Shown piece by piece: positions 5,240 to 64,000 of a stretch of 64,000 nt of DNA. The DNA is from Anaeramoeba ignava BMAN (taxonomy: Eukaryota > Protista > Anaeramoebae): NCBI GenBank assembly GCA_028826165.1, contig JAPDFW010000096.1, positions 1 through 64,000 on the forward strand, read 5' to 3'. Under the pieces are notes generated by a model. That model was not told where the DNA came from. It did not search any database and saw only the letters and a list, made by a program, of their open reading frames with translations. A program made the translations under genes and the position numbers. Position 1 is the first letter of the stretch. Every line of letters begins with the position of its first letter.

Positions 5240-5327
5240 TTTTGAAAAGAAAAAAATGAAAAATGATTTTTGGAATTTTAATTTTAATTTTAATTTTGAT
5301 TTTGATTTTCTTATTATTAATTAATTT

Positions 5328-6764
5328 TTAAATAAAATAAGTCTCAAGTTCATCAACTTCCCATTTATCATAAGAACCAGCTAAATAACTCTTAGCTTCA
5401 TTTGTATCAAACTTAATTCCATTAGGCAAATTGTAGCTTTGACCAAAATTCGAAAAACCATTTCTCAAATTAGATGACAAACCAATATCGGTTTCATATC
5501 CAAATCCAAAATATGGACCATAATTTGAATAAGAAAAAATTGCAAATTGTTCTTGATCTTTTCTAATTTGAAATTTCTCTGGCTTTCTGTCTCCTTTATC
5601 ATTTCTTATCGAAAAAATAAATGCAGTGGAATCGATTTGATATCCTCGATCAGGATTTGACCAAAATTGACCCCATTTTGATTTATCTTTGGGGAAAAAT
5701 CCAACTTGAGTAAAACCTCCAAAAATAAAATTATCTTTGGTTTGAATAATAACTAATGTTTTTCCTTTATCATCACAAATTGAATGCCATTTTTTAGAAT
5801 CAAATCCATCTCTTTTTGCTGAAAATCCTTTTTTCATTTTGGAAAAGAATTGATTATCATGTATCCATCTCCTTAATGCGTTAATATTTTTAATATCTTT
5901 CATGATTTCCGACGAAGTTAAACTAAATCTTGTTTTGAAAATTAATGACTTTTCTTGCTCGATAAATTGATCGATTTTATTTACATCGTTTCCAGTTTGA
6001 AGTCTTTGAAATTCAATTAATTTTTGTGAAATTTCATTCGGAAGCAAATTTTCTTTCAAAGCATCCCTAATTTCTTCTTCCATAAAATCAATAAATCTTA
6101 TTTGATGGAGAATATTTGAAATTTGATTTTGTAATTGCTGCTTGTCTTGATTAACATTTGATTTATGTTTTCCCCATTTTATTATTGATTGAAAAAGTTC
6201 AAATTCATTTGTTTGGATTTCATCATGTGATAAAATTGAATGTAAATGATTTTCTTCGAGTTGAAGAAAAAATGGAGTTTTGATAAATTCTTGAAAATTA
6301 TCCAAAATAAATTGATAAGAATAGTTCAATAATTGATTTAAGTTCATTGTTTCAGATAATTTAAGAACATCAGCAATAATTTCAAACTGTAAATTGTTTT
6401 TGATAAAATTTGAGCAATTTTCAACTAATTCATCAATTAAGTATTTTGAAGAAAAATACAAAATTTCACCAACATTTTCAAAGTGAATTTTAATTTTCCC
6501 TGAATAAAGATAAGTCAAAATTGAAGATATGGTTAAATTTGAAAAATCTTTTATAATTAATTTATTTTCTTGGAATTCTTCCGTTTTTGAATTGAAAAGA
6601 GTTCTAAAATATCGACTTCTTGATGAAAGAATTGATTTATGAGTTTTAAATGAAATTTGGTTTTGTTCACAAATTATTTCAAAATCAGAATAATTTTCCT
6701 TTTTATTTTGAAATAAATTTTTTAAATCATTTGAAAGTTTTTCTAAATTTGAATAAGTTTCCAT
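5328..6764 (-). CDS. BTB-BACK-TLDc domain protein
   Basis: N-terminal BTB (SDFEIIC..FKTHKSILSSRSRYF), BACK (EFELFQSIIKW) and TLDc (FSAKRDGF..GKTLVII..FIFGGFT..AFIFS..GPYFG..VDELETY). Confidence 0.9.
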   Translation of the reverse strand: METYSNLEKLSNDLKNLFQNKKENYSDFEIICEQNQISFKTHKSILSSRSRYFRTLFNSKTEEFQENKLIIKDFSNLTISSILTYLYSGKIKIHFENVGEILYFSSKYLIDELVENCSNFIKNNLQFEIIADVLKLSETMNLNQLLNYSYQFILDNFQEFIKTPFFLQLEENHLHSILSHDEIQTNEFELFQSIIKWGKHKSNVNQDKQQLQNQISNILHQIRFIDFMEEEIRDALKENLLPNEISQKLIEFQRLQTGNDVNKIDQFIEQEKSLIFKTRFSLTSSEIMKDIKNINALRRWIHDNQFFSKMKKGFSAKRDGFDSKKWHSICDDKGKTLVIIQTKDNFIFGGFTQVGFFPKDKSKWGQFWSNPDRGYQIDSTAFIFSIRNDKGDRKPEKFQIRKDQEQFAIFSYSNYGPYFGFGYETDIGLSSNLRNGFSNFGQSYNLPNGIKFDTNEAKSYLAGSYDKWEVDELETYFI

Positions 6765-6913
6765 TTTGAATGAAGAAAAAATGAAAAATGAAAAATGAAA
6801 AATGAAATTTTGGATTTTTAATTTTAATTTTAATTTTGATTTTAATTTTAATTTTGATTTTAATTTTAATTTTAATTTTAATTTTAATTTTGATTTTGAT
6901 TTTGATTTTAATT

Positions 6914-8710
6914 TTAATTTTGATTTTGATTATTAAATTTGTTAATTAATAAATCAAATAAATTTGGATTTGTTTGATTTAATTGAAAATAATCAATTCC
7001 AATTTGAATTTCATCAATTATTTCTTGTGTAATTTCAATTCCATCTTTAATTTGATTTGAATAAATCCAATATTCAAATATTTGGAATGATTTATTATTT
7101 AATTCACTATAATCTGTAACTTTATTAGAAGTATCTTCTGTTACAGATAAAAACATTCCTCGATATAATTCACTTCTCATTATTAATATTAATTTTGGAA
7201 ATTTATATTGTTTTTCTTTTCTTTCAATTATAAAATCTTTTTCATTTTCATTTTCATTTTCATTTAAATAAATTCTTTTAATTGTTTCTTCAATTTTTTC
7301 ATTAGAATTTATAATTTCTTTAATTTCAAAATATAATATTGGATTTATTTTGGAATTATTTGAATAAATCATTTCAAATATTTGATTTGATTCTTTAATT
7401 GATTTTTTTGAAATAATTTCTTGAAGTTTTTCATTTTGATTTTGATTTTGATTTAATCTATATTTCAATATTAATTTATGAGCTGAGATTATTTCTCCAT
7501 TTTCTGTTTTAAATGAAATATTGCAAAATTCTTTTCTTCTAAATAATTTTATCAAATCTTCTTCAAGATTGGAAAAAGAAAGAGGAGAATAATAAATAAA
7601 TGAATTGTTAAATCCACAAGAAATATGATAATTAGAAATATTTTCATTAAATTTTAATTTAGGAAGTTCAATTTGAATTGGAATTAATTGATGTTGTTCA
7701 TTTTCATTTCCTAATTGACCATAAAAGTTATTTCCAAATGAAATAAGATTTTCTTTGGAAGTTAAAATCAAAGTATGATTAAATCCACAAGAAAAATCAA
7801 GAATATTATCATCATTCTCAAATAAAGATGATTTGATTTCAGTAAATTCATAAGTACCTCTATTTTTGCCAAGTCCATTGAATTTATAATAACCACATGA
7901 ATAAAGTTTTCTTTTTGGATTTTCATTTTCATTTTCATTTTCAATCAACATTATTGAATGACAATTTCCGCATTGGATATCAATTATTTCGCCTTTTGAA
8001 ATATTTTGGATTTTGGTTAATTTATCAATTTTCCACTCTTGTCTTAATTCACCTAATCCAAGTTGGCCATCACTATTATCTCCACATCCAAATAATTCTT
8101 GATTTGAATTTAAAAGAAAAGCATGATAAGAAGAATTTCCTGAAAATATTTTAGAAACATTTTTCATCATTAAAATTGGTTTTTCTGTTTTATTAAGTGT
8201 TTTAGAATTAAAACCAAGTTGACCGTAATAATTTGAACCAATTCCATAAACATTTTGATTTGAAGTTAATAAATAAATTGAACTGTATCCAGAAACAATA
8301 TCTTGAATTATTCTATCATTTGTATCTTCAATTAATGATGAAATATTGATAAATTCATTTGGATTATTTGGATTAATATCTTCTCCTTTGGCAAATACAT
8401 TTCCTTCTATTGTTAAAATAGCTTCATTGTGAAAACCAACAGTTACTTTTTGAATATTTTCTTCAATTTGGATTTTTGAAGGATTTTGATTTGAATATTC
8501 TTCATTTAAATATTCTATTGCTTTTCCATTTTTAAAAAGGAAAATTGTTGAAAAAAAACTTGATGCAATTTGTTTAATTTGCTTTTCATTTTCATTTTCA
8601 TTTTCATTTTCATTTTCAAATTTAAATTGAATTGGTTTTGTTATTATTTCTGGTTTATTTTTGATAAGTTTTGGATATTGATTCCAACCAAAAAATATAA
8701 TTTCATTCAT
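6914..8710 (-). CDS. RCC1-repeat + BTB/POZ protein (copy 2)
   Basis: Intact 598-aa ORF, paralog of copy 1. Confidence 0.9.
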   Translation of the reverse strand: MNEIIFFGWNQYPKLIKNKPEIITKPIQFKFENENENENENEKQIKQIASSFFSTIFLFKNGKAIEYLNEEYSNQNPSKIQIEENIQKVTVGFHNEAILTIEGNVFAKGEDINPNNPNEFINISSLIEDTNDRIIQDIVSGYSSIYLLTSNQNVYGIGSNYYGQLGFNSKTLNKTEKPILMMKNVSKIFSGNSSYHAFLLNSNQELFGCGDNSDGQLGLGELRQEWKIDKLTKIQNISKGEIIDIQCGNCHSIMLIENENENENPKRKLYSCGYYKFNGLGKNRGTYEFTEIKSSLFENDDNILDFSCGFNHTLILTSKENLISFGNNFYGQLGNENEQHQLIPIQIELPKLKFNENISNYHISCGFNNSFIYYSPLSFSNLEEDLIKLFRRKEFCNISFKTENGEIISAHKLILKYRLNQNQNQNEKLQEIISKKSIKESNQIFEMIYSNNSKINPILYFEIKEIINSNEKIEETIKRIYLNENENENEKDFIIERKEKQYKFPKLILIMRSELYRGMFLSVTEDTSNKVTDYSELNNKSFQIFEYWIYSNQIKDGIEITQEIIDEIQIGIDYFQLNQTNPNLFDLLINKFNNQNQN

Positions 8711-8779
8711 TTTTGAAAAGAAAAGAAAAAAAATGAAAAAATAAATTTTGGAATTTTGATTTTGATTTTGATTTTAATT

Positions 8780-10570
8780 TTAATTATTAAATTTGTTAAT
8801 TAATAAATCAAATAAATTTGGATTTGTTTGATTTAATTGAAAATAATCAATTCCAATTTTAATTTCATCAATAATTTCTTGTGTAATTTTAATTTCATTT
8901 TTAATTTGATTTGAATAAATCCAATATTCAAATATTTGGAATGATTTATTACTTAATTCACTATAATCTGTAACTTTATTAGAAGTATCTTCAGTTACAG
9001 ATAAAAACATTCCTCGATATAATTCACTTCTCATTATTAATATTAATTTAGGAAATTTATATTGTTTTTCTTTTCTTTCAATTATAAAATCTTTTTCATT
9101 TTCATTTTCATTTTCATTTAAATAAATTCTTTTCATTGTTTCTTCAATTTTTTCATTTGAATTTATAATTTCTTTAATTTCAGAATATAATTTTGGATTT
9201 ATTTTGGAATTGTTTGAATAAATCATTTCAAATATTTGATTTGATTCTTTAATTGATTTTTTTGAAATAATTTCTTGAAGTTTTTCATTTTGATTTTGAT
9301 TTTGATTTAATCTATATTTCAATATTAATTTATGAGCTTTGATTATTTCTCCATTTTCTGTTTTAAATGAAATATCACAAAATTCTTTTCTTCTAAATAA
9401 TTTTATCAAATCTTCTTCAAGATTGGAAAAAGGAGAAGGAGAATAATAAAGAAATGATTTATAAGATCCACAAGAAATATGATAATTGGAAATATCTTCA
9501 TTAAATCTTATTTCAGGAAATTTAATTTGAATTGGAAATGTTTGATCTCCTGTATATATACTTCCTGATTGACCATAAAAATTATTTCCAAATACTATCA
9601 ATTTTGAATTAGAGGTTAAAATCAAAGTATGATTATATCCAATAGAAAAATCAATAATATTATCATCATTTTTAACTAAAGATTTGATTTCAGTAAATTC
9701 ATAAGTATCTAGATCTTTATCAAGTCCATTAACTTCCCAACTTCCACATGAATAAAATTTTCTTTTTGGATTTTCATTTTGATTTTCAATCAACATTATT
9801 GAATGAGACTTTCCACATTTGATATCAATTATTTTTCCTTTTGGAATATTTTGGATTTTGGTTAATTTTTGGATTTTCTTCTCTTCTTTTCTTTTTGATT
9901 CATTTAATCCAAGTTGGCCAGAATAATTCCATCCGCATCCAAATAATTCTTGTTTTGAATTTAAAAGAAAAGCATGATAAGAAGAATTTCCTGAAAATAT
10001 TTTAGAAACATTTTTCATCATTAAAATTGGTTTTTGTGTTTCTATTAATTTTTTAGAACCAAGTTGGCTAAGATGATTTGCACCAATTCCATAAGCATTG
10101 TGTTTTAAAGTTAATAAGTAAATTGATTTAGCTCCGGAAACAACATCTTGAATTATTCTATCTTTTTTATTTTTGATTAATGATGAAATATTGATAAATT
10201 GTTTTGGATAATTTGGAATTTTTGGATTAATATATTCTCCTTTTGCAAATACATTTCCTTCTATTGTTAAAATAGCTTCATTTTCAGAACCAACAGTTAC
10301 TTTTCGAATATTTTCTTCAATTTGGATTTTTTGAATATTTTTTCTTGAATATTCTTCATTTAAATATTCTATCGCTTTTCCATTTTTAAAAAGGAAAATT
10401 GTTCCAAAATAACCTGTTGAAATTTGTTCAATTTGTTTTTCATTTTCATTTTCATTTTCATTTTCATTTTCATTTTCAAATTTGAATTGAATTGGTTTTC
10501 TTATTTTTTCTGGTTCATTTTCAATAAGAACTGGGTGTTTATTCCAACCAAAAAATAAAATATCATTCAT
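8780..10570 (-). CDS. RCC1-repeat + BTB/POZ protein (copy 3)
   Basis: Intact 596-aa ORF with the same architecture. Confidence 0.9.
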   Translation of the reverse strand: MNDILFFGWNKHPVLIENEPEKIRKPIQFKFENENENENENENEKQIEQISTGYFGTIFLFKNGKAIEYLNEEYSRKNIQKIQIEENIRKVTVGSENEAILTIEGNVFAKGEYINPKIPNYPKQFINISSLIKNKKDRIIQDVVSGAKSIYLLTLKHNAYGIGANHLSQLGSKKLIETQKPILMMKNVSKIFSGNSSYHAFLLNSKQELFGCGWNYSGQLGLNESKRKEEKKIQKLTKIQNIPKGKIIDIKCGKSHSIMLIENQNENPKRKFYSCGSWEVNGLDKDLDTYEFTEIKSLVKNDDNIIDFSIGYNHTLILTSNSKLIVFGNNFYGQSGSIYTGDQTFPIQIKFPEIRFNEDISNYHISCGSYKSFLYYSPSPFSNLEEDLIKLFRRKEFCDISFKTENGEIIKAHKLILKYRLNQNQNQNEKLQEIISKKSIKESNQIFEMIYSNNSKINPKLYSEIKEIINSNEKIEETMKRIYLNENENENEKDFIIERKEKQYKFPKLILIMRSELYRGMFLSVTEDTSNKVTDYSELSNKSFQIFEYWIYSNQIKNEIKITQEIIDEIKIGIDYFQLNQTNPNLFDLLINKFNN

Positions 10571-42500: not shown

Positions 42501-44357
42501 TTAATTTTTATTTTGATTTTGATTATTAAATTTATTAATTAATAAATCAAATAAATTTGGATTTGTTTGATTTAATTGAAAATAATCAATTCCAATTTGA
42601 ATTTCATCAATTATTTCTTGTGTAATTTGAATTTCATCTTTAATTTGATTTGAATAAATCCAATATTCAAATATTTGAAATGATTTATTACTTAATTCAC
42701 TATAATCTGTAACTTTATTAGATTTATCTTCAGTTACAGATAAAAACATTCCTCGATATAATTCACTTCTCATTATTAATATTAATTTTGGAAATTTATA
42801 TTGTTTTTCTTTTCTTTCAATTATAAAATCTTTTTCATTTTCATTTTCATTTTCATTTAAATAAATTCTTTTAATTGTTTCTTCAATTTTTTCATTTGAA
42901 TTTATAATTTCTTTAATTTCAGAATATAATTTTGGATTTATTATTCTGTTTGAATAAATCATTTCAAATATTTGATTTGATTCTTTAATTGATTTTTTTG
43001 AAATAATTTCTTGAAGTTTTTCAATTTGATTTTGATTTTCATTTAATCTATATTTCAATATTAATTTATGAGCTTCAATTATTTCTCCATTTTCTGTTTT
43101 AAATGAAATATCACAAAATTCTTTTCTTTCAAATAATTTTATCAAATCTTCTTCAAGATTTGAAAAAGAAGGAGAAGAATAATAAAGAAATGAATTATAA
43201 TATCCACAAGAAATATGATAATTGGAAATATCTTCATTAAATCTTAATTTAGGAAGTTCAATTTGAATTGGAATTGATTGATATGTTGTATTTCCAGTTC
43301 CTAATTGACCAAAGAAATTATAACCAAATCCTATTAATTTTGATTTGGATGTTAAAATCAAAGTATGTATACCACCAACAGAAATTTCAAGAATATTATC
43401 ATCATTTTCAAATAAAGATGATTTAATTTCAGTAAATTCATAAGTATTTCTAATTCCGTTTTTGCCAAGTCCATTATATCTATAATCTCCACATGAATAA
43501 AGTTTTCTTTTTGGATTTTGATTTTGATTTTCATTTTCAATTAACATTAGTGAATGAGAATATCCACATTGAATATCAATTATTTTGCCTTTTGGAATAT
43601 TTTGGATTTTGGTTAATTTATGGATTTTTGTTTCTTCTCTTCTTGATTTTCCTAATCCAACTTGACTATAATTGTTATATCCGCATCCAAATAATTCTTG
43701 ATTTGAATTTAAAAGAAAAATAAAATCTGAAGAATTTCCTGAAAATATTTTAGAAACATTTTTCATTATTAAAATTGGTTTTTCTGTTTTATAAAGTGTT
43801 TTAGAATCTAAACCAAGTTGACAATATTGATTTGAACCAATTCCATAAGCATTTTGATTTGAAGTTAATAAATAAATTGATTTAGCTCCAGAAATAATAT
43901 CTCGAATTATTCTATCATTTGTATCTTCAATTAATGATGAAATATTGATAAATTCATTTGGATTTCCTGAATTAATATCTTTTCCTTTTGCAAATACATT
44001 TCCTTCTATTGTTAAAATAGCTTCATTTTGATAACCAACAGTTACTTTTTGAATATTTTCTTCAATTTGGATTTTTACAAGATTTTGATTTGAATCATTT
44101 TTATTTAAATATTCTATTGCTTTTTCATTTTCAAAAAGGAAAATTGTTGAAAATAAACTTGATGAAATTTGTTTAATTTGTTTTTCATTTTCATTTTCAT
44201 TTTCATTTTCATTTTCATTTTCATTTTCATTTTCATTTTCATTTTCATTTTCATTTTCATTTTCAAATTTAAATTGAATTGGTTTTGTTATTTTTTCTGG
44301 TTTATTTTTGATAAGTTTTGATTCTTGATTTCTTCCAAAAAATAAAATTTCATTCAT
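42501..44357 (-). CDS. RCC1-repeat + BTB/POZ protein (copy 4)
   Basis: Intact ORF; true start MNEILFF at 44357 by comparison with paralogs. Confidence 0.9.
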   Translation of the reverse strand: MNEILFFGRNQESKLIKNKPEKITKPIQFKFENENENENENENENENENENENENENEKQIKQISSSLFSTIFLFENEKAIEYLNKNDSNQNLVKIQIEENIQKVTVGYQNEAILTIEGNVFAKGKDINSGNPNEFINISSLIEDTNDRIIRDIISGAKSIYLLTSNQNAYGIGSNQYCQLGLDSKTLYKTEKPILIMKNVSKIFSGNSSDFIFLLNSNQELFGCGYNNYSQVGLGKSRREETKIHKLTKIQNIPKGKIIDIQCGYSHSLMLIENENQNQNPKRKLYSCGDYRYNGLGKNGIRNTYEFTEIKSSLFENDDNILEISVGGIHTLILTSKSKLIGFGYNFFGQLGTGNTTYQSIPIQIELPKLRFNEDISNYHISCGYYNSFLYYSSPSFSNLEEDLIKLFERKEFCDISFKTENGEIIEAHKLILKYRLNENQNQIEKLQEIISKKSIKESNQIFEMIYSNRIINPKLYSEIKEIINSNEKIEETIKRIYLNENENENEKDFIIERKEKQYKFPKLILIMRSELYRGMFLSVTEDKSNKVTDYSELSNKSFQIFEYWIYSNQIKDEIQITQEIIDEIQIGIDYFQLNQTNPNLFDLLINKFNNQNQNKN

Positions 44358-44601
44358 TTTCTTTTTTTTATTTTTTATTTTTTTTAATTTTTTGAAAAGA
44401 AAAAAATGAAAAAAATAATTTTGGAATTTTCTGTTCAAAAACCAAAAAATTTTTTCAAACAAAACAAAACAAATCAAAACAAATCAAAACAAAACAAATC
44501 AATCCAAATCAAATCAAATCAATTCAATTCAAATCAAATCAAATTTAAAAAAGGAAATGAATTAATTTGATTTAGGTTTTTTTAAAATATGAAAGAAGAA
44601 T

Positions 44602-46537
44602 TTAATTTGGACAAATATTTTGAATTTCATTTGAATTTGGATAATGAATTTCTTGTGTTTCAATTTCTCCATCTTTATTTCTAATATAAGTTTGAATTTC
44701 TCTTAAATTTTCTTCAACTCGAATAATTCTTGTTCCTTTTTATTATTTCAAATTTTAATTTAAATTTAAATTAATTTTTTGATTTTGTTTTGTTTTAATT
44801 TAAATAAACAAACCTTGAACTTTTGGAAGTTTAGGTTGATAAGATCCAAAACCTGATTTTCTTCCATAAGCAAGATAAATCCCATTATAATTTCCAATAA
44901 AATCATTTTCATGATCATGTCCAACAAAAACTCCATAAACATCTCCTTGTTCAAGAAATGTTTGATAAAGTCCTGTATTTTTTGACCAATAACTAATATC
45001 CTCTTCTTTAACACCTTTTAATTTTGAATTTGATTTTAATTTTGATTTTGATTTTGAATTTGATTTTAATTTTGATTTTGATTTTGATTTTGATTTTAAT
45101 TTTGATTTTGATTTTGATTTTGTGTTTAATTTTGATTTTGAATTTAATTTTGATTTTGATTTTAATTTTGATTTTGATTTTTATTTTGATTTTGTGTTTA
45201 ATTTTGATTTTGAATTTAATTTTTATTTTTATAAATTTACCATAACAAGTATTATTATTCCAAACATCCATGTATTCAGGAAGTGGGATATGAAAAAATG
45301 CTAAAGCAGGAATTGTTCTATTATTCTTTTCTTTCAAATAATTTGAAATATTCTTATACCATTCAATTTGATCAGGATAAACACAACTCCAACCAAGAAC
45401 ACCTTCACAATCTGAATCACCTATTTATTCAATATTATTTTAATATTCAATATTATTTTTTAATATTTTAATTGTAAAAACCTGTATCAAAAAAATAAAG
45501 AATTAATTTAGTTTCATTTGAATCTGAACCAAGAACTTCAAGATAATAATTAGAAACTCCATGAATATTTTCTGGTCCTTTTTGTGAATAACTGTATTCA
45601 TGTTTCATATCTAATTCAATAAAAGTATTTTCAGGAGAATAAAACCTTTTTAATTAAAAATTAAAAATTAAATTAAATTAAATTAAAATCAAAAAATTTG
45701 AATAACAATTCCAAAAAATAAATCAAACCCTGCATAATCATGATTTCCAAAAACAACACTATATTTCTTTTGATAAAAATTTGCAAAATAAACTGCTCTT
45801 TCCCAACCTATCATTGGTACTTCAGCATAAAAAGCAAGTAAATCACCTATTTTAATTTCAATTTAATTCCAATTTAATTTATTTATTCCAATTCATTTAT
45901 TCCAATTTATTTCAATTTATTTATTTCAATTTATTTATTTAAATTTATTTATTCCAATTTATTTATTTCAATTTATTTATTCCAATTTAATTTCAATTTA
46001 TTTATTTCAATTTATTTATTCCAATTTATTTATTTTTAATTTATTTATTTAAATTTATTTATTTAAATTTATTTATTTCAATTTATTTATTCTAATTTAT
46101 TTATTTCAATTTATTTATTTCAATTTATTTATTCCAATTTATTTATTCCAATTTATTTATTTTAATTTATTTATTTAAATTTATTTATTTCAATTTATTT
46201 ATTTAAATTTATTTATTCCAATTTATTTATTTCAATTTATTTATTTTAATTTATTTATTCCAATTTATTTATTTTTAATCCAAAATTAAATTAAAAATTA
46301 ATAAAAAAATTACCAGAAAAAACAACAAAATCAGTATTTAATCCTTCAGTTTGAAAATAAGTTTCTTGAGCTAAATCTGATTTTATATCGTTTGGGAAAA
46401 TAACCCCCATAATGTAAATCAGTTAATTGCATAATTTGGAATGTTCCATCACTTCTAAACCTTAATGGTTCTTTTGCTAAAATATTTTCAATTATTAAAA
46501 AACAAAAAAAAACAAAACTAACTTGATTTATATTCAT
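44602..46537 (-). CDS. Dcr2/PAP29-like metallophosphoesterase (copy C), 1-nt frameshift near 46395
   Basis: Same motifs and exons; reads TTTGGGAAAA where copy E reads TTTGGAAAA. Confidence 0.8.
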
Positions 46538-47281
46538 TTTTTAAACTCAAAATCAAAAATCAAAAATCAAAAATCAAAAAAATTTTTTAAATGAAAAAAA
46601 AGAAATGATTAAAATTTTTTTCGTTTTTATATTCCAATTTTAAACCAAAAAAATTTAAATTTTTATTATTTTTTATTTGATTTTAAATCTAATTTCTTTC
46701 AATATCATTTTCAATTTCATTTTTCTGGCAAATAACTAAAAAAAAATTTTATTTTTTCTTTCTTTTTTGATCTAAATTACCATCTTGATCCAAAAATTAT
46801 AACAATAAATAATTAAAAAGAAATTAAAAGGAAATTAAGAGAAAGTCAATTACTTTTATTTATTATTTTTTATTTTTAGGGGTTTTCGATCAATTAAAAA
46901 TTTTTTATTATTGATCAAATTTATTATTTAATTTAAATTTTTATTTATTTATTTTTTAATCCAAATCATTTTATTTTCTGTTAATAAAACAAAATAAAAT
47001 TAAATCTTTTTTCAATTTTTTAATCCAAAAAAAAAAACAAAAAATGATAAAAATTTCGTTTCTTTTTTTTTGGGGTTTTAATTTTAATTTTAATTTTGAT
47101 TTTTAATTTGATTTTTATTTTAATTTTAATTTTGATTTTAATTTTGATTTTGATTTTGATTTTAATTTTGATTTTAATTTTGATTTTGATTTTGGTTTTG
47201 ATTTTGATTTTAATTTTGATTTTGATTTTAATTTTGATTTTGATTTTGATTTTGATTTTGATTTTGATTTTGATTTTGATT

Positions 47282-48911
47282 TTAAATGAAATAAGTTTCA
47301 ACTTCATCAACAACCCATGAATTAAAAGAACCAGCTAAATAACTTTCCGATTCCTTTGTTCTATACTTAATTCCATTAGGAATATTGTAACTCCGACCCA
47401 TATTTGAATAACCAGGTTGTAAATCAGCATTCAAAGCAATATCTGGTCCATTGATTCCCCCTCTTCCAAATCTTGGGCCCTGATTTGGATGGGAAAAAAG
47501 AGCATAATTTTCTTCATCTTTTTGAATTGAAAATTTTTGCGGTTTTCTATCTCCTTTATCATTTCTTAATGAAAAAATAAATGCATTTGAATCATTAATG
47601 ATTTTTCCATTTGCATTTTTAAATCCAACTTGAGTAAAACCTCCAAAAATAAAATTATCTGTTGTTTTGATAATAACTAATGTTTTTCCTTTCCCATCAA
47701 CTGCTTTATGCCAATTTTGAGAATCAAATCCATCTCTTTTTGCTGAAAATCCTTTTTTCATTTTAGAAAAAAAATCATTATCATTTATCCATTCTTGTAA
47801 TTTCTTAACATATTCAATATCTTGAACAATTTCTGAATCTGAAAATTGAGGAAAATTCTTTCTTAATTCAAATCCGTTGATCATAAATTTCATTTTTTCC
47901 AATTCTCTTTTCAGATTTTCGTTTTCCAATTTAATTTTTTCAAATTCTTCATCTTTTTTCTCAACCATTGTTTCCAATTTATCTTCACTCTCTTTTTCTT
48001 TATCTTCACTCTCTTTTTCTTTATCTTCACTCTCTTTTTCTTGGTTTTCAACAACTCTTTGTGGTTGATTAAATAAAAAAGAATTTGAAAGAAAAAAGTC
48101 GAAATATTCTTGTTTTGAAATTGAATCTTTATCAAATAATGAAAAAAAAGAATGAAATAATCTTTCTTTTTCATAATCTTTTTCTTTCTCTCGTGTTAAT
48201 CTTTCATTTCTTTTTTCAATCCAATTATTTAAAAATTGAAAAAAATCAAATTGAAAAATTTCTTTTTTTTCTTGTTTAAATTGAATAAATTTGATAATTT
48301 CTTCTTTAGTTAAATTGAATAAATTCTCATTATTCTGAATTTGGGAAAAATTTTGATTTATTAATTCAAAACATTTTATTTCAATTTCATTTGAATTTAA
48401 ATTTCGATTTTGGAATAAAAATTGGAAAAAATTTGAATAATTAATTGAATTTGGAATTTTTTTTTGAATAATTTCTTTCAATAAATTTAATTTAAAATAA
48501 ATTGAAATTTCCAATAATTGGAGAAGATTTTCTTGATTCTCAAAAGAAATATTTCCATAATAAATATATTTCAAAATTGATTCCATTTCTTTTTTATTAA
48601 ATTGATTTAAAAAAATAGAATGAAAATCATTTTCTGCTCTTAAAAACTCATTAAAAAAAGGAGATCTTGAAGATAAAATTGATTTATGAACTTTAATTTC
48701 AAAAGGATTTGATTTATTCTCAACAAAAATTGAAAAATCTTTAAATGAATTTCCATTTAAAAGGTTTGAATAATCTTTAATTAAATTTTTTGTTACTTTT
48801 TTTTCTAAATTTTTCATTTTCATTTTGATTTTCAATTTGATTTTCAATTTGATTTTCAATTTGAATTTCATTTTCATTTTGATTGTTGTTATTATTATTA
48901 TTATTATCCAT
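47282..48911 (-). CDS. BTB + TLDc domain protein
   Basis: BTB (DFSIFV..VHKSILSSRSPFF) and TLDc (FSAKRDGF..FIFGGFT..GPRFG..VDEVETY). Probable start is MDNNN at 48911 with a 1-nt indel near 48812, otherwise the ATG at 48823. Confidence 0.85.
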
Positions 48912-49261
48912 TTTTGTTTTTTGGTTTTTAAAAAAAAAGGAAAAATGAAAAAAAATTTAAAAATGAAAAAGTGGATTTTGAAAATAAATAAAAATATAAA
49001 AATAAGAATAAATTTAAATTAATAATTAATTTAATTTTCTTTTTAATTTATTATTTTAAATTAATTTATTAATAAATTATTATTATTTTTATTAATTTTT
49101 ATTATTAAAAAGGAAAATTATTTTAATTTAATTTTTAATTTAATTTTTGAATTTAAAAATTATTAATAAATTTAAATTTTAAAACAATTTTCCAAATTAA
49201 TATTAATTCAATTTAATTCAAAAAGATAAAATTTTTAATTTCAAAAATCAATTTTCAAAAT

Positions 49262-49645
49262 ATTTTTAAATAATAAAATATTTAAATCTAAAACAATAAA
49301 TTATTATTTTAAACATAAAATTAAATATTAAATTATATTTTTAAATTAATTTATAAATTAAATATTAAATTAAACCTATTCTTATTTTTATATTTATATG
49401 TTAAATATTTAAATAATAAAATATTTAAATATAAAACAATAAATTATTATTTTAAACATAAAATTAAATATTAAATTATATTTTTAAATTAATTTATAAA
49501 TTAAATATTAAATTATATCTATTCTTATTTTTTATATTTATATGTTAAATATTTAAATAATAAAATATTTAAATATAAAACATTAAATTATTATTTTAAT
49601 AATAAAATTAATTATTAAATTAAATATTAAATTATATCTATTCTC
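49262..49645. repeat. Dispersed short copy (~2.5 units) of the 10758-14590 satellite
   Basis: AAATAATAAAATATTTAAATCTAAAACAATAAATTATTATTTT..ATTCTTATTTTTATATTTATATGTTAAAT matches the satellite unit. Confidence 0.85.
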
Positions 49646-49655
49646 ATTTTCTTTA

Positions 49656-51434
49656 TTAATTTTGATTATTAAATTTATTAATTAATAAATCAAATAAATT
49701 TGGATTTGTTTGATTTAATTGAAAATAATCAATTCCAATTTGAATTTCATCAATTATTTCTTGTGTAATTTGAATTTCATCTTTAATTTGATTTGAATAA
49801 ATCCAATATTCAAATATTTGAAATGATTTATTACTTAATTCACTATAATCTGTAACTTTATTAGAAGTATCATTTGTTACAGATAAAAACATTCCTCGAT
49901 ATAATTCACTTCTCATTATTAATATTAATTTTGGAAATTTATATTGTTTTTCTTTTCTTTCAATTATAAAATCTTTTTCATTTTCATTTTCATTTTCATT
50001 TAAATAAATTCTTTTCATTGTTTCTTCTATTTTTTCATTTGAATTTATAATTTCTTTAATTTCAGAATATAATTTTGGATTTATTATTCTGTTTGAATAA
50101 ATCATTTCAAATATTTGATTTGATTCTTTAATTGATTTTTTTGAAATAATTTCTTGAAGTTTTTCAATTTCATTTTGATTTTCATTTAATCTATATTTCA
50201 ATATTAATTTATGAGCTGAAATTATTTCTCCATTTTTGGTTTTAAATGAAATATCACAAAATTCTTTTCTTTCAAATAATTTTATCAAATCTTCTTCAAG
50301 ATTGGAAAAAGAAGGAGAATAATAATAAAGAAATGAATTATAATATCCACAAGAAATATGATAATTGGAAATATCTTCATTAAATCTTAATTTAGGAAGT
50401 TCAATTTGAATTGGAATTGATTGATATGTTGTATTTCCAGTTCCTAATTGACCAAAGAAATTATAACCAAATCCTATTAATTTTGATTTGGATGTTAAAA
50501 TCAAAGTATGTATACCACCAACAGAAATTTCAAGAATATTATCATCATTTTCAAATAAAGATGATTTGATTTCAGTAAATTCATAAGTATTTTCATTTTT
50601 GCCAAGTCCATTATATCTATAATCTCCACATGAATAAAGTTTTCTTTTTGGATTTTGATTTTGATTTTCATTTTCAATTAACATTAGTGAATGAGCGTAT
50701 CCAGATTGAATATCAATTATTTTGCCTTTTGGAATATTTTGGATTTTGGTTAATTTATGGATTTTTGTTTCTTCTCTTCTTGATTTTCCTAATCCAACTT
50801 GACTATATTCATTATATCCGCATCCAAATAATTCTTGATTTGAATTTAAAAGAAAAACATGATTTGAAGAATTTCCTGAAAATATTTTAGAAACATTTTT
50901 CATCATTAAAATTGGTTTTTCTGTTTTTGGAAGTGTTTCAGAATCAAAACCAAGTTGATCATATTCATTTGAACCAATTCCATAAGCATTTTGATTTGAA
51001 GTTAATAAATAAATTGATTTAGCTCCAGAAATAATATCTCGAATTATTCTATCATTTGTATCTTCAATTAATGATGAAATATTGATAAATTCATTTGGAT
51101 TTTTTGGATTAATATCTTTTCCTTTGGCAAATACATTTCCTTCTATTGTTAAAATAGCTTCATTTTGATAACCAACAGTTACTTTTTGAATATTTTCTTC
51201 AATTTGGATTTTTTCAGGATTTTGATTTAAATATTTTTCATATAAATATTCTATTGCTTTTCCATTTTTAAAAAAGAAAATTGTTGAAAATAAACTTGAT
51301 GAAATTTGTTTAATTTGATTTTCATTTTCATTTTCATTTTCAAATTTAAATTGAATTGGTTTTTTTATTTCATTTGATTCATTTTTGAAAAGTTTTGGTG
51401 AATAATTTGAACCAAAAAATAAACAATCATTCAT
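49656..51434 (-). CDS. RCC1-repeat + BTB/POZ protein (copy 5)
   Basis: Intact 592-aa ORF. Confidence 0.9.
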   Translation of the reverse strand: MNDCLFFGSNYSPKLFKNESNEIKKPIQFKFENENENENQIKQISSSLFSTIFFFKNGKAIEYLYEKYLNQNPEKIQIEENIQKVTVGYQNEAILTIEGNVFAKGKDINPKNPNEFINISSLIEDTNDRIIRDIISGAKSIYLLTSNQNAYGIGSNEYDQLGFDSETLPKTEKPILMMKNVSKIFSGNSSNHVFLLNSNQELFGCGYNEYSQVGLGKSRREETKIHKLTKIQNIPKGKIIDIQSGYAHSLMLIENENQNQNPKRKLYSCGDYRYNGLGKNENTYEFTEIKSSLFENDDNILEISVGGIHTLILTSKSKLIGFGYNFFGQLGTGNTTYQSIPIQIELPKLRFNEDISNYHISCGYYNSFLYYYSPSFSNLEEDLIKLFERKEFCDISFKTKNGEIISAHKLILKYRLNENQNEIEKLQEIISKKSIKESNQIFEMIYSNRIINPKLYSEIKEIINSNEKIEETMKRIYLNENENENEKDFIIERKEKQYKFPKLILIMRSELYRGMFLSVTNDTSNKVTDYSELSNKSFQIFEYWIYSNQIKDEIQITQEIIDEIQIGIDYFQLNQTNPNLFDLLINKFNNQN

Positions 51435-51544
51435 TTTGTTTTTTTTATTTTTTAATTTTTTTTAATTTTTTGAAAAGAAAAAAATGAAAAAAAAATTTTG
51501 AAGTTAAAATTGAAGTTGAAAATGTTTTGAATTTTGAATCAATT

Positions 51545-53611
51545 TTAAAATGGATCGCAAAAAGTTTGTGATGTTCCATTTGGATAATGAATTTCTTGGA
51601 TTTCTTTTATTCCTTCTTTGTTTCTAATATAAGTTTGAAATAGTCTTGAATTTTCTTGAACTTGAATAATTCTTGTTCCTTTTTTTATTTTGAAAAATTT
51701 AAATTTAATTTATTGATTTTGATTTTATTGATTTAATTCAAAAAAACCTTGAACTATTGGTCTTTCAGGTTCAGAACAACCAAATCCTGATTTTCTTCCA
51801 TAAGCAAGATAAATTCCATTATAATTTCCAATATAATCATTTTTGTGATCATGTCCAACAAAAACTCCATAAACATCTCCTTGTTCAAGAAATGTTTGAT
51901 AAAGTCCTGTATTTTTTGCAGAACAACAACTAAGTTCTCCTTTCACACCTTTTAAATTGATTTTGATTTTGATTTTGATTTTGATTTTAGATTTTGATTT
52001 TGATTTTGATTTTGATTTTGATTTTGATTTTAATTTTAATTTTTATAAATTTACCATAACAAGTATTATTATTCCAAACATACATGTATTCAGGAAATGG
52101 AATATGGAAAAATGCTAAAGCAGGTTTTGTTTCTCCATTCTTTTCTTTCAAATAATTTGATATATTCTTATACCATTCAATTTGATCAGGATAAACACAA
52201 CTCCAACCAAGAACACCTTCACAATTAAAGTCACCTATTTATTCAATATTATTTTAATATTCAATATTATTTTTTAATCCAAATTATTTTTAATCCAAAT
52301 TATTTTTAATTCAAAATTATTTTTAATTCCATATTATTTTTAATCCAAAATATTTTTAATTCAATATTATTTTTAATATTCAATATTATTTTTAATCCAA
52401 ATTATTTTTAATTCAAATTGTTTTTAATCCAAATTATTTTTAATATTCCATATTATTTTTAATATTCAATATTATTTTTTAATCCATATTATTTTTAATC
52501 CAAATTATTTTTAATTCAATATTATTTTTAATATTCAATATTATTTTTAATATTCAATATTATTTTTAATTCCATATTATTTTTAATTCAATATTATTTT
52601 TAATATTCAATATTATTTTTAATTCAATATTATTTTTAATATTCAATATTATTTTTAATCCAATATTATTTTTAATTCAAATTATTTTTAATTCAATATT
52701 ATTTTTAATCCAAAATATTTTTAATCCAATATTATTTTTAATCCAATATTATTTTTAATTCCATATTATTTTTAATTCAATATTATTTTTAATATTCAAT
52801 ATTATTTTTAATATTCAATATTATTTTTAATTCCATATTATTTTTAATTCAATATTATTTTTAATATTCAAAATTATTTTTAATTCAAATTATTTTTTAA
52901 TATTTTAATTGTAAAAACCTGTATCAAAAAAATAAAGAATTAATTTAGTTTCATTTGAATCTGAACCAAGAACTTCAAGATAATAATTAGAAACTCCATG
53001 AATATTTTCTGGTCCTTTTTGTGAATAACTGTATTCATGTTCCATATCAATTGCAATAAGTTCATCTCGAGTTAATCGACTAAAATTAAAAATTAAATTG
53101 AAAAATTAAATTGAATAAATGAAAAAATAATTAAATTGAAAATTATAACTAACCCTGAATCATCATGATTTCCAAATGTAATACAATATTTATGTTTCTT
53201 TGAGTTTGCAAAATAAATTGCATTTTCCCAAGCAATTTTTGGGTCTAAAACATATGGAAGAAGTAAATCACCTTTTTAAAATTAAATTTAAAATTAAAAA
53301 AAATAAACATTTGATTAACATTTAAAATAAAAAAAAATTAAAAAATTAAAAATAAATTAAAATAAATAAATTAAATAAAAATACCAGTAAAAATTACAAA
53401 ATCAGTATTTGATCCTTCTGTTTTAAAATAAGCTTCTTGTGCTAAATCTGATTCAATATCCTTAATAGAAAAATCTCCATAATGTAAATCAGTTAATTGC
53501 ATAATTTGAAATGTTCCATCACTTCTAAACCTTAATGGTTCTTTTTCAGCTTTGTTTTTTAAAATTAAAAAACCAAAAAAAATTAAACAAAAGTAAAATT
53601 TTCTTTATCAT
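51545..53611 (-). CDS. Dcr2/PAP29-like metallophosphoesterase (copy D), +1 nt in the signal-peptide region (error or pseudogene)
   Basis: Close paralog of copy F with an extra base near 53593; the remaining exons look intact to ..TFCDPF*. Confidence 0.75.
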
Positions 53612-53885
53612 TTTGTTTTTATGACAAAAAAAAAGAAGAAAGAAGAAAAAAAAATGAACCAAAAAATAAATTTTTTTTAAATTTACCAAAAAAAAAAAAG
53701 CAAAAAATTTTTTCAATAAACAAAAAGAAAAACTGAAAAGAATGATTTTGATTTTAATTTTAATTTTAATTTTAATTTTAATTTTAATTTTAATTTTAGT
53801 TTTAATTTTAATTTTGATTTTGATTTTGATTTTAATTTTAATTTTAATTTTGATTTTAATTTTAATTTTAATTTTGATTTTAATT

Positions 53886-55699
53886 TTAATTATTAAATTT
53901 GTTAATTAATAAATCAAATAAATTTGGATTTGTTTGATTTAATTGAAAATAATCAATTCCAAATTCAATTTCTTCAATTATTTCTTGTGTAATTTGAATT
54001 TCATCTTTAATTTGATTTGAATAAATCCAATATTCAAATATTTGAAATGATTTATTACTTAATTCACTATAATCTGTAACTTTATTGGAAGTATCATCTG
54101 TTACAGATAAAAACATTCCTCGATATAATTCACTTCTCATTATTAATATTAATTTAGGAAATTTATATTGTTTTTCTTTTCTTTCAATAATAAAATCTTT
54201 TTCATTTTCATTTAAATAAATTCTTTTCATTGTTTCTTCAATTTTTTCATTGGAATTTATAATTTCTTTAATTTCTGAATATAATTTTGGATTTATTTTG
54301 GAATTGTTTGAATAAATCATTTCAAATATTTGATTTGATTCTTTAATTGATTTATTTGAAATAATTTCTTGAAGTTTTTCAATTTGATTTTGATTTTCAT
54401 TTAATCTATATTTCAATATTAATTTATGAGCTTCAATTATTTCTCCATTTTTGGTTTTAAATGAAATATCACAAAATTCTTTTCTTCTAAATAATTTTAT
54501 CAAATCTTCTTCAAGATTGGAAAAAGAATGAGGAGAATAATAAAGAAATGATCCATAAAATGCACAAGAAACATGATAATTGGAAATATCTTCATTAAAT
54601 CTTAATTTAGGAAGTTTAATTTGAATTGGAATTGATTGATTTTTTGTATCTTCAGTTCCTAACTGACTATAATAATTATTTCCAAATCCAAATAATTTTG
54701 AATTGGATGTTAAAATCAAAGTATGAGAATGACCAACAGAAATATCAAGAATATTATCATCATTTTCAAATAAAGATGATTTGATTTCAGTAAATTCATA
54801 AGTATCTTCACTTTTTCCAAGTCCATTATATTTATAATATCCACATGAATAAAGTTTTCTTTTTGGATTTTCATTTTCATTTTCATTTTCAATCAACATT
54901 ATCGAATAAGCAACTCCACATTGAATATCAATTATTTTGCCTTTTGGAATATTTTGGATTTTGGTTAATTTATGGATTTTTATTTCTTCTTTTCTTGATT
55001 TTCCTAATCCAAGTTGACCATATTCATTCCAACCGCATCCAAATAATTCTTGATTTGAATTTAAAAGAAAAATTGAATCTGAAATATTTCCTGAAAATAT
55101 TTTAGAAACATTTTTCATCATTAAAATTGGTTTTTCTGTTTTTTTAAATGTTTCAGAATCAAAACCAAGTTGACCATATTCATTTGAACCAATTCCATAA
55201 GCATTTTGATTTGAAGTTAATAAGTAAATTGAATTGTATCCAGAAACAATATCTTCAATTATTCTATCATTTGTATCTTCAATTAATGATGAAATATTGA
55301 TAAATTCTTTTGGATTTTCTGAATTAATATCTTTTCCTTTGGCAAATACATTTCCTTCTATTGTTAAAATAGCTTCATTTCTAGCACCAACAGTTACTTT
55401 TTGAATATTTTCAATTTGGATTTTTTCAAGATTTTGATTTGAATCATTTCTATTTAAATATTCTATTGCTTTTCCATTTTCAAAAAGGAAAATTGTTGAA
55501 AATAAACTTGATGAAATTTGTTTAATTTGTTTTTATTTTCATTTTCATTTTCATTTTCATTTTCATTTTCATTTTCATTTTCATTTTCATTTTCATTTTC
55601 ATTTTCAAATTTAAATTGAATTGGTTTTGTTATTTTATATGGTTCATTTTTGATAAATTTTGATTCTTGATTTCTTCCAAAAAATAAACAATCATTCAT
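53886..55699 (-). CDS. RCC1-repeat + BTB/POZ protein (copy 6), frameshift near 55530
   Basis: ORFs 55463-55699 and 53886-55121 join into the paralog architecture; the indel is at the end of the ENEN tract. Confidence 0.8.
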
Positions 55700-55824
55700 T
55701 TTCTTTTTTTATTTTTTATTTTTTTTAATTTTTTGAAAAGAAAAAAATGAAAAATTTAGATTTTGATTTTAATTTTGATTTTAATTTTGAATTTTAATTT
55801 TGAATTTTAATTTTGAATTTAATT

Positions 55825-57623
55825 TTAATTATTAAATTTATTAATTAATAAATCAAATAAATTTGGATTTGTTTGATTTAATTGAAAATAATCAATTCCT
55901 GTTTCTAACTCATCAATTATTTCTTGTGTAATTTGAATTTCATCTTTAATTTGATTTGAATAAATCCAATATTCAAATATTTGAAATGATTTATTACTTA
56001 ATTCACTATAATCTGTAACTTTATTTGATTTATCATTTGTTACAGATAAAAACATTCCTCGATATAATTCACTTCTCATTATTAATATTAATTTTGGAAA
56101 TTTATATTGTTTTTCTTTTCTTTCAATAATAAAATCTTTTTCATTTTCATTTTCATTTTCATTTAAATAAATTCTTTTCATTGTTTCTTCAATTTTTTCA
56201 TTTGAATTTATAATTTCTTTAATTTCAGAATATAATTTTGGATTTATTATTCTATTTGAATAAATCATTTCAAATATTTGATTTGATTCTTTAATTGATT
56301 TATTTGAAATAATTTCTTGAAGTTTTTCAATTTGATTTTGATTTTGATTTTGATTTAATCTATATTTCAATATTAATTTATGAACTGAAATTATTTCTTC
56401 ATTTTTGGTTTTAAATGAAATATCACAAAATTCTTTTCTTCTAAATAATTTTATCAAATCTTCTTCAAGATTTGAAAAAGGAGAAAGAAAAGGAGAATAA
56501 TAAAGAAATGATTTTTTATATCCAGAAAGAACATGATAATTGAAAATATCTTCATTAAATCTTAATTTAGGAAGTTTAATTTGAATTGGAATCATTTGAT
56601 TTTCACTTGTATCTCCAATTCCTAATTGACCAAAGAAGTTATCTCCAAATCCTATCAATTTTGAATTGGATGTTAAAATCAAAGTATGAGAATGACCAAC
56701 AGAAATTTCAAGAATATTATCATTTTCATTTTCAAATAAAGATGATTTGATTTCAGTAAATCTTCTTTTATTTTCACTTTTACCAAGTCCATTATATCTA
56801 TAATCTCCACATGAATAAAGTTTTCTTTTTGGATTTTCATTTTCATTTTCATTTTCAATCAACATTATTGAATGATTAAATCCAGATTGAATATCAATTA
56901 TTTTGCCTTTTGGAATATTTTGGATTTTGGTTAATTTTTTGATTTTTGTTTCTTCTTTTCTTGATTCTCCTAACCCAAGTTGACCATGTTCATTCCAACC
57001 GCATACAAATAATTCTTGATTTGAATCTAAAAGAAAAATTGAATCTGAAGTATTTCCTGAAAATATTTTAGAAACATTTTTCATCATTAAAATTGGTTTT
57101 TTTGTTTCTTTGAAGTACTTCAGGATCAAAACCAAGTTGACAATATTGATTTGAACCAATTCCATAAGCATTTTGATTTGAAGTTAATAAGTAAATTGAA
57201 TTGTATCCAGAAACAATATCTTCAATTATTCTATCATTTGTATCTTCAATTAATGATGAAATATTGATAAATTCTTTTGGATTTTCTGGATTAATATCTT
57301 TTCCTTTGGCAAATACATTTCCTTCTATTGTTAAAATAGCTTCATTTCTAGCACCAACAGTTACTTTTTGAATATTTTCTTCAATTTGAATTTTTACAAG
57401 ATTTTGATTTGAATCATTTTTACTTAAATATTCTATTGCTTTTCCATTTTCAAAAAGGAAAATTGTTGAAAAATAAACTTGATGAAATTTGTTTAATTTG
57501 TTTTTCATTTTCATTTTCATTTTCATTTTCAAATTTAAATTGAATTGGTTTTATTATTTTTTCTGGTTTATTTTTGATAAGTTTTGATTCTCGATTTCTA
57601 CCAAAAAATAAACAATCATTCAT
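55825..57623 (-). CDS. RCC1-repeat + BTB/POZ protein (copy 7), two frameshifts (~57470, ~57110)
   Basis: Three overlapping ORFs reconstruct the paralog; start MNDCLF at 57623. Confidence 0.8.
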
Positions 57624-62791: not shown

Positions 62792-64000
62792 TCATTTCTT
62801 TTGTTGAAGAAGTGTTAAAATTTCTTGATCTTGAGTAAAATCTTCTGGTTTCTTTTCCTAAATGAAAATTTAAATTTGAATTAAAATTTAAATTTGAATT
62901 AAAAACAAAACAATTTAATTAAAATAAATTTACTCTCTTTAATTTTTTTGAAATAAAATGAATTAATTATTAAATATTAAATGAAAAAATTTTTAATTTT
63001 GTTTACAATCTAATAAAATTTAAATTAAAATTTAAATTTAAATTAAAATATTAAAAAAATAGTGAATTGGATAATCTTATTAAATTACATCAACTGCATT
63101 TATATCAGCACCAAAATCAAGTAAAATTTGAATAATTTCTTTACTTGCTCCATATTCACAAGCAAGATGAAGTGGAGTTTTGTTCTAATTGAAAAAATAT
63201 TGAAAAAATATTACAATTACTAATGAATCTTTTTTTTAATTTTCAATTTTAAAATCAAACCCACTAAATAAAATTAAAATTCATTTTGAAAATTAAATTA
63301 AAATCAAAATTAATTTTGAAAATTAAAATTAAAATTAAAATTCATTTTGAAAATTAAATTAAAATTCATTTTGAAAATTAAATTTATAAAAATTAAATTT
63401 ATAAAAATTTTACAGCCTGATCTCAAAAATTCAATATAAATTATTCCAAATCAAAAAAAAAAAAAAGAAAGATAATTTTTTTTTCCATTTATTATATTAT
63501 ACAGCTTTTGAATGAATATCAGCTCCTGATGTTAATAAAAATTTTACTAATTCTACATTTGTTCGGTTTCTGCAAACACAATGAAGTGGACTATCTCTCT
63601 ATTTAAAATGAAAAATTATAAATCAACCTAATTTATTGAATTGATAAAGAAAAAAATACCATCTAAAAATTTTTTTATTTTTGAGAATTTAAATGTGAAT
63701 AAAAAATAATCAAATGTTTACTTTCTTAAAAAAATAAAAATATTTATTTTCATATTCATATTTTTGTTTTTGTTTTTGTTATTTTTATTTTACTGTTTTC
63801 GAATTAATACTTGCTCCTTTATCAAGTAATAATTTAACAATATCAATATTTGCATTCCATTGACAAGCAGAATGAAGTGGAGTATTTTGCTAAATAAAAA
63901 ATATTTGAAAATTAAGAGTGAAAATAAATTCCTCAAAAATAATCAAAATTAAAATCAATAATTCTTTTTTACCCACTAAATAAAAATAAAAAAAAATCAA
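62792..64000 (-). CDS. Ankyrin-repeat protein, 3' portion, built from 96-nt exons and 3-nt microexons
   Basis: Exons 63889-63794 (QNTPLHSACQWNANIDIVKLLLDKGASINSKT), 63598-63503 (RDSPLHCVCRNRTNVELVKFLLTSGADIHSKA), 63184-63089 (NKTPLHLACEYGASKEIIQILLDFGADINAVD) and terminal 62857-62792 (EKKPEDFTQDQEILTLLQQKK*). All are phase 0 with AG/GT boundaries. Confidence 0.9.
62934..63975 (-). other. Seven candidate single-codon microexons (AG-NNN-GT)
   Basis: TGG 63975-63973, AAA 63724-63722, ATG 63662-63660, GCT 63416-63414, TGG 63263-63261, ATT 63009-63007, AGA 62936-62934. Confidence 0.75.

Follow-up and report, generated by a model that had tools for sequence, protein, structure and literature searches.

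Codon-sized microexons have been described in the NACHT-ankyrin (nank) genes of Tuber melanosporum (Iotti et al. 2012, PMID 22289772, via PMC4986451, PMC3689799, PMC10197012, PMC13449251), an expanded ankyrin family in which tens of 3-nt exons are read as a source of binding-domain variation. Within the literature searched, such a codon-sized exon design is otherwise unreported, and nothing on microexons turned up there for Anaeramoeba or other protists (most subscription papers lay outside the search). Animal and plant microexons of 1-27 nt include GT-AG exons down to 1-3 nt, which are missed by annotation and often touch binding motifs; they are mostly isolated and located at conserved motifs, and the animal ones depend on dedicated factors, e.g. 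SRRM4 or PRP-40 (PMC8831610, PMC4674806). Two further systems share aspects of exon layout. The brown algal ROCO and NB-ARC-TPR genes, which are candidate receptor families, carry one repeat per same-phase exon (PMC11378527, PMC13449251). The schistosome MEGs encode secreted proteins, mostly from exons of 6-36 nt, with runs of tiny symmetrical exons.

The locus considered here belongs to Anaeramoeba ignava BMAN, a metamonad and not a fungus, whose genome has 19.35% GC; GC drops to 8.14% in the introns, which are most often 76 nt long (PMC11550330). The window, i. e. the whole stretch of 64,000 nt that was analysed, comprises bases 1-64000 of contig C97 in a searched assembly of 42,843,398 bp and 147 contigs. 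An ankyrin-only gene has its start at contig position 66308, past the window end, and its 3’ third at positions 62792-64000 on the minus strand. The full gene model encodes 389 aa in 32 exons separated by 31 GT-AG introns, with both a start codon and a capped C-terminal end; by inspection, the protein opens with a charged ankyrin cap and lacks an evident signal peptide. All 12 main exons are in phase 0 and measure 90, 90, nine times 96, and 66 nt. Ten of the 11 gaps between them contain exactly two AG-NNN-GT islands each, 20 in total, while the remaining gap (contig 65186-65275) is a single 90-nt intron with zero islands that leaves a loop two residues short. The features within and next to the window, with the 3-nt exons as predicted, are as follows.

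Contig 64046-64048, minus strand, just outside the window: 3-nt exon GAA, partner of the TGG before main exon 9
63973-63975, minus strand: 3-nt exon TGG (Trp), second of the pair before main exon 9
63794-63889, minus strand: main exon 9, 96 nt, phase 0, one ankyrin repeat minus two hairpin-tip residues (PF00023, E 2.6e-9)
63722-63724, minus strand: 3-nt exon AAA (Lys)
63660-63662, minus strand: 3-nt exon ATG (Met)
63503-63598, minus strand: main exon 10, 96 nt, ankyrin repeat (Pfam Ank match)
63414-63416, minus strand: 3-nt exon GCT (Ala)
63261-63263, minus strand: 3-nt exon TGG (Trp)
63089-63184, minus strand: main exon 11, 96 nt, ankyrin repeat (Pfam Ank match)
63007-63009, minus strand: 3-nt exon ATT (Ile)
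62934-62936, minus strand: 3-nt exon AGA (Arg)
62792-62857, minus strand: last exon, 21 codons plus stop, C-terminal cap

All three 96-nt window exons match PF00023 Ank above the Pfam cut-off. Split at the islands, the three window gaps of 195, 318 and 231 nt yield introns of 69/59/61, 86/150/76 and 79/70/76 nt, and the introns of the whole gene then measure 59-90 nt, with one of 150 nt. All 20 islands are preceded by AG and followed by GT, so that the definition of a microexon (≤27-30 nt, canonical sites) is met, and their donors resemble those of the main exons. A branch-point consensus was not found in the introns of the gene. The initial annotation, which was made from the sequence alone, had listed seven AG-NNN-GT islands with their flanks, phase-0 repeat exons of 96 nt, and the gap lengths and intron split; all of this held for the window, with every coordinate and flank correct on the minus strand. 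Its claim of two islands between every repeat exon likewise held in the window, but in the full gene only for 10 of 11 gaps. The absence of stops among the seven codons was confirmed and extends to all 20 triplets of the gene; the 12 main exons are stop-free as well.

The one-repeat-per-exon layout, with main exons of 90-96 nt in a single phase, is reminiscent of the brown algal genes. These, however, shuffle whole repeats and may keep spare ones on the other strand, whereas the variable unit in A. ignava is one codon; in a motif scan of the locus, all ankyrin motifs lay on the coding strand, with no spare ones on the non-coding strand. The schistosome MEGs share the runs of tiny symmetrical exons, but the product considered here, a folded repeat protein, lacks an evident signal peptide, and only 60 of its 1170 coding nucleotides are microexonic; it does not fit the MEG criterion (mostly microexonic, secreted). 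The Tuber-type criterion of tens of codon-sized exons is fulfilled by the window gene with its 20 triplets, as well as by a kinase-ankyrin gene with 27 (see below). Nevertheless, the window gene falls outside the nank family, since it lacks a NACHT domain and an exon-by-exon search of the A. ignava genome returned no NACHT (PF05729) match.

An obvious objection is that short motifs of this kind arise by chance or through assembly error in A+T-rich DNA. The 19% GC content, the long-read assembly and frameshifts visible elsewhere speak for such an artefact. Dinucleotide shuffles, however, gave an expectation of 0.21 islands in the three window gaps against 6 observed (maximum 3 in 3000), and a mean of 1.08 over the full gene against 20 observed (maximum 7 in 3000). 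Spacings k other than 3 in the range of 0-15 yielded 0-3 instances each, and the opposite strand has 0 islands at k=3. A scan of the whole window with filters placed five of five minus-strand 3-nt islands in an A+T-rich context inside the ankyrin gene. Together with the exclusion of stops and an independent transcriptome ORF of a paralogue, in which random agreement at 14 residues would have a probability of ~1e-19, these controls all but rule out chance or artefact.

The residues encoded by the triplets coincide with those that the main exons lack. In intronless ankyrin paralogues of the same genome, the loop from the GxDxN to the TPLH motif comprises seven residues in 178 of 191 repeats and five in none. 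With the islands, the loops of the window gene have seven residues, and without them five, the island-free gap excepted. This supports the earlier proposal that the islands restore full repeats, although shorter loops may be tolerated, as the one gap without islands gives a 5-residue loop. A junction HMM built from the intronless junctions scored "both islands" best at 9 of 10 junctions of the window gene, and the island order fits better than random order (permutation P=0.017). Aromatic residues favor slot 2 over slot 1 of the islands (11 vs 2 of 28), as they favor the second over the first position in the intronless repeats (24 vs 7 of 178). By motif counting, the islands map to repeat positions 2 and 3 of the β-turn, and these two positions are the most variable columns of the loop, with entropies of 2.84 and 3.34 bits. 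In designed ankyrin libraries (DARPin/ANK-N5C), β-turn positions including repeat positions 2 and 3 are randomised as part of the binding surface (PMC4308713). As an engineered system, these libraries offer an analogy limited to function. That the island residues contact a binding partner in this gene is inferred. Most likely, each repeat of this gene is assembled from one framework exon of 90-96 nt and two exons of a single codon, the latter encoding the β-hairpin tip.

Retention of the triplets in mRNA is shown for a paralogue. Searching the locus as DNA returned only low-complexity intron matches. A protein search with one window exon led to P0071, an ANK-BTB-BTB protein with EukProt as its sole source, whose name has the form used for ORFs predicted from A. 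ignava transcriptome contigs. It maps to contig C101, a paralogue with the same architecture as the window gene. At seven of seven double gaps, the residues missing from the main exons are those of the genomic islands, in order (KF, YA, NQ, TV, TN, EN and NS). P0071 furthermore agrees with the genome at a lone island (D) and at three exons that measure 9-12 nt; such 9- and 12-nt microexons (RRF, IENI, DESK; C101:195186, 196410, 197200, 197980), which the transcript contains, stand in for the island pair at some junctions. One island disagrees, with Ser in the transcript and GGT in the genome. This mismatch lies in a three-repeat block that is duplicated in the C101 assembly and single in P0071. 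Residues 1-68 of P0071 are absent from the locus, and its last exon is 97% identical. P0071 may hence represent another allele or a chimeric contig. The transcript evidence rests on one assembled contig of one paralogue and reveals one isoform only. Protein searches with single exons did not recover the window gene's own product, which is uninformative on longer proteins. For the window gene itself, neither read nor cDNA nor protein is at hand, and the presence of both codons in most of its mRNAs is a likely inference. Two further proteins, P0003 and P0004, run into intron-like low-complexity sequence shortly after the first ankyrin repeat and stop there.

The initial annotation had also expected standard gene predictors to miss these exons, and this could be shown for one GenBank model. 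KAJ5075632.1 (C65:394400-401250) leaves out the islands at almost all of its junctions and adds no residue at 13 double-island gaps; at two single-island gaps the following exons carry one extra leading codon, and island-free gaps are only partly compensated. Many models of A. ignava ankyrin, BTB and TLDc genes are probably wrong in the same way, at the most variable residues.

Taken together, the islands are likely real 3-nt exons that are spliced in. The canonical sites and unit-length introns are shown, as is triplet retention in the paralogue; inclusion in the window gene is inferred. The annotated idea of one-codon exons in tandem is thereby supported through loop length, stop exclusion, the paralogue transcript and a genome-wide enrichment detailed below. 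As to mechanism, splicing may proceed by intron definition, in which each ~70-nt A+T-rich intron would be removed on its own, marked by its own ends since GT and AG are rare at ~10% GC. Sites only 3 nt apart would not need to be occupied jointly, because removal of the first intron places the codon in a long exon. Stepwise removal of the introns around microexons has been proposed for plants (PMC8831610); the order of removal in A. ignava is only inferred. Apparently, the spliceosome routinely joins runs of 3-nt exons here, so that pure intron definition and the order of splicing can be tested in an organism that does so naturally.

Alternatively, the islands could be recursive or nested splice sites that clear an intron of 200-300 nt stepwise and leave nothing in the mRNA. 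Their consensus donors and acceptors and the division of the gaps into unit-sized introns would agree with this reading. However, recursive sites correspond to AG|GT at zero spacing, of which the gene has 2 (k=0) as compared with 20 at k=3, and they would neither exclude stops nor match loop residues. In addition, the transcript of the paralogue keeps its triplets, which contradicts the recursive reading there and renders it very unlikely overall. The earlier conclusion that pure intron definition or recursive splicing is needed can accordingly be narrowed: recursive splicing is not required, since the triplet stays in the mRNA and the introns are of ordinary size with GT-AG ends, while intron definition remains as an inference.

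It is also conceivable, yet unlikely, that the window copy is silent or mis-spliced and that its islands are relics of an inherited architecture. This view can draw on the lack of expression data for the copy, on the one gap without islands, and on a large, duplicating family in which decayed units occur in one array. Against it stand the conservation of GT-AG in 31 of 31 introns, the stop-free 12 exons and 20 triplets, the start codon and capped end, and islands that remained intact while the intron interiors diverged.

The preferred reading of functional 3-nt exons gains weight from other loci. The two-island design recurs at eight further ankyrin loci, of which two are nearly identical and some are fusions with BTB or kinase domains; they hold 42 more k=3 islands in 21 gaps, with exactly two in 19 of these. 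A strict tandem-island pattern matched 843 times genome-wide, compared with 24 matches for a 4-nt (N4) control and ~12 expected from scattered singles. These matches are not independent, because many derive from arrays. The genome-wide single-island count (5829, below the reversed control) says nothing by itself. Stops are avoided in both slots of the pairs: TAA/TAG occur 0 times in the first slot, where TAT/TAC occur 35 times, and TAA/TGA 0 times in the second.

How the triplets evolve can be glimpsed at locus L018 (C83:343500-344800), where a unit of two repeats was recently duplicated and the introns are ~97% identical. The two exon pairs differ by seven replacement codons, clustered at the loop and the first helix, versus one silent change, and one island changed from TTT to TCT. 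This hints at possible diversifying selection, albeit from a small sample. Tandem duplication may add a unit of intron plus triplet and deletion may remove one, which would alter loop length in frame. With the variable codons inferred to be uncoupled from the framework, loops could change in both residue and length through duplication, loss and mutation while staying in frame, and the family would diversify its binding surface mainly in the genome.

Longer runs of islands occur in three other types of gene, in which all array exons are inferred from sequence without transcript support. The first is a kinase-ankyrin gene (C2:7000-11000, minus strand) with 3, 10, 10 and 4 islands per gap, 27 in all, where ~3 per gap would give the canonical loop. 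Frameshifts are present in its kinase exon, reflecting either assembly error or decay. In the second, a BTB/coiled-coil gene (C1:409300-413200, minus strand), the tail consists of ~30 one-codon islands in near-identical 75-nt units whose flanks differ by 2-6% and whose triplets differ by 52-76%. Four units lack GT, two of these having GC instead, and a long (ATT)n tract interrupts the array. By inference, this is the expected trace of tandem duplication of intron plus triplet followed by fast change of the triplet. The third type comprises two tandem TLDc genes (C1:1057850-1064750, minus strand) with 30 and 16 consecutive islands after a GPSFG motif, inside the domain. As the array donor is in phase 1, each of these islands straddles two codons. 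Their middle base, the wobble position, is T in 42 of 46, and none of the 46 starts with AA, AG or GA, as compared with 42 of 75 in phase-0 arrays; following T, such starts would create a stop. The phase-1 reading gives a loop rich in Y/D/N/S/P/F. A phase-0 reading, which would result in 30 hydrophobic residues, was rejected in view of the phase-1 donor. Further arrays of this kind extend past the TLDc pair to about C1:1073200.

Such arrays bring up the question whether 3-nt exons are alternatively skipped to give many loop variants per gene, as described for Tuber nank. This reading is compatible with the main explanation. Several points are in its favor: any exon subset of the window gene stays in frame, since all its exons are in phase 0; the kinase-ankyrin gene holds far more islands than its canonical loop would take; no ordered pair of islands in the TLDc arrays can form a stop; and the Tuber genes set a precedent. 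On the other hand, the number of islands equals that of the residues needed at 10 of 11 gaps of the window gene, and the sole transcript seen includes both islands at each of its double gaps. Moreover, the arrays may be included whole, because intronless paralogues also have long loops (15 residues), and stop-free pairing is equally expected from growth by tandem duplication. On balance we lean slightly against skipping, which appears less likely at two-island gaps and more likely in the arrays of 10-30. An intronless ankyrin gene at C76:302119-305208 carries two loops of 15 residues and may have arisen by retrocopying from an array-type gene whose islands were all spliced in.

A bolder reading, which is possible but no more than that, would combine a genome-wide spelling of surface loops, triplet by triplet, in unrelated domains (ankyrin, TLDc, BTB tails) with skipping within arrays of 10-30 exons, so that single genes generate a large repertoire of binding loops in one cell. 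If true, skipping in phase-1 arrays would additionally change the neighboring amino acid, and a splicing-based receptor repertoire would have evolved in a unicellular, symbiont-bearing eukaryote apart from the truffle case. Whether splicing serves a protist to diversify its binding proteins can be tested directly on the arrays.

Codon-sized microexons of ankyrin genes are already known from Tuber, and single exons of 1-3 nt from plants and animals. New in A. ignava are the two-per-repeat pattern, the large genome-wide count, the non-ankyrin hosts and the codon-straddling arrays. Unlike in Tuber, as far as the citing papers describe it, the hosts comprise ankyrin-only, ANK-BTB, ANK-kinase, BTB and TLDc genes with about 800 tandem pairs, two islands are fixed per repeat at the hairpin tip, and arrays can be in phase 1. 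Extensive alternative splicing has been reported for Tuber; the sole assembled transcript from A. ignava contains all of its double-gap islands. Compared with animal and plant microexons, those of A. ignava are serial, with up to 30 in a row and minimal introns between them, and the triplet is the variable part. With codon-sized exons at ankyrin loops now seen in a second and distantly related organism, convergence with Tuber becomes testable.

Directly upstream of the ankyrin gene (C97:66700-69000) lies a degenerate A+T-rich tandem repeat of 9-10 nt that spans >2 kb. Several tandem intronless long ORFs of 410-660 codons, unidentified, occupy window positions 3734-10570 and 42501-57171 on the minus strand. 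At 35700-62620, also on the minus strand, at least six tandem gene copies with DLH, GNHD and GHDH motifs are found, which we take to be metallophosphoesterase-like; their introns are ordinary, with lengths of ~76-94 nt, and some are expanded by (ATTTTG)n.
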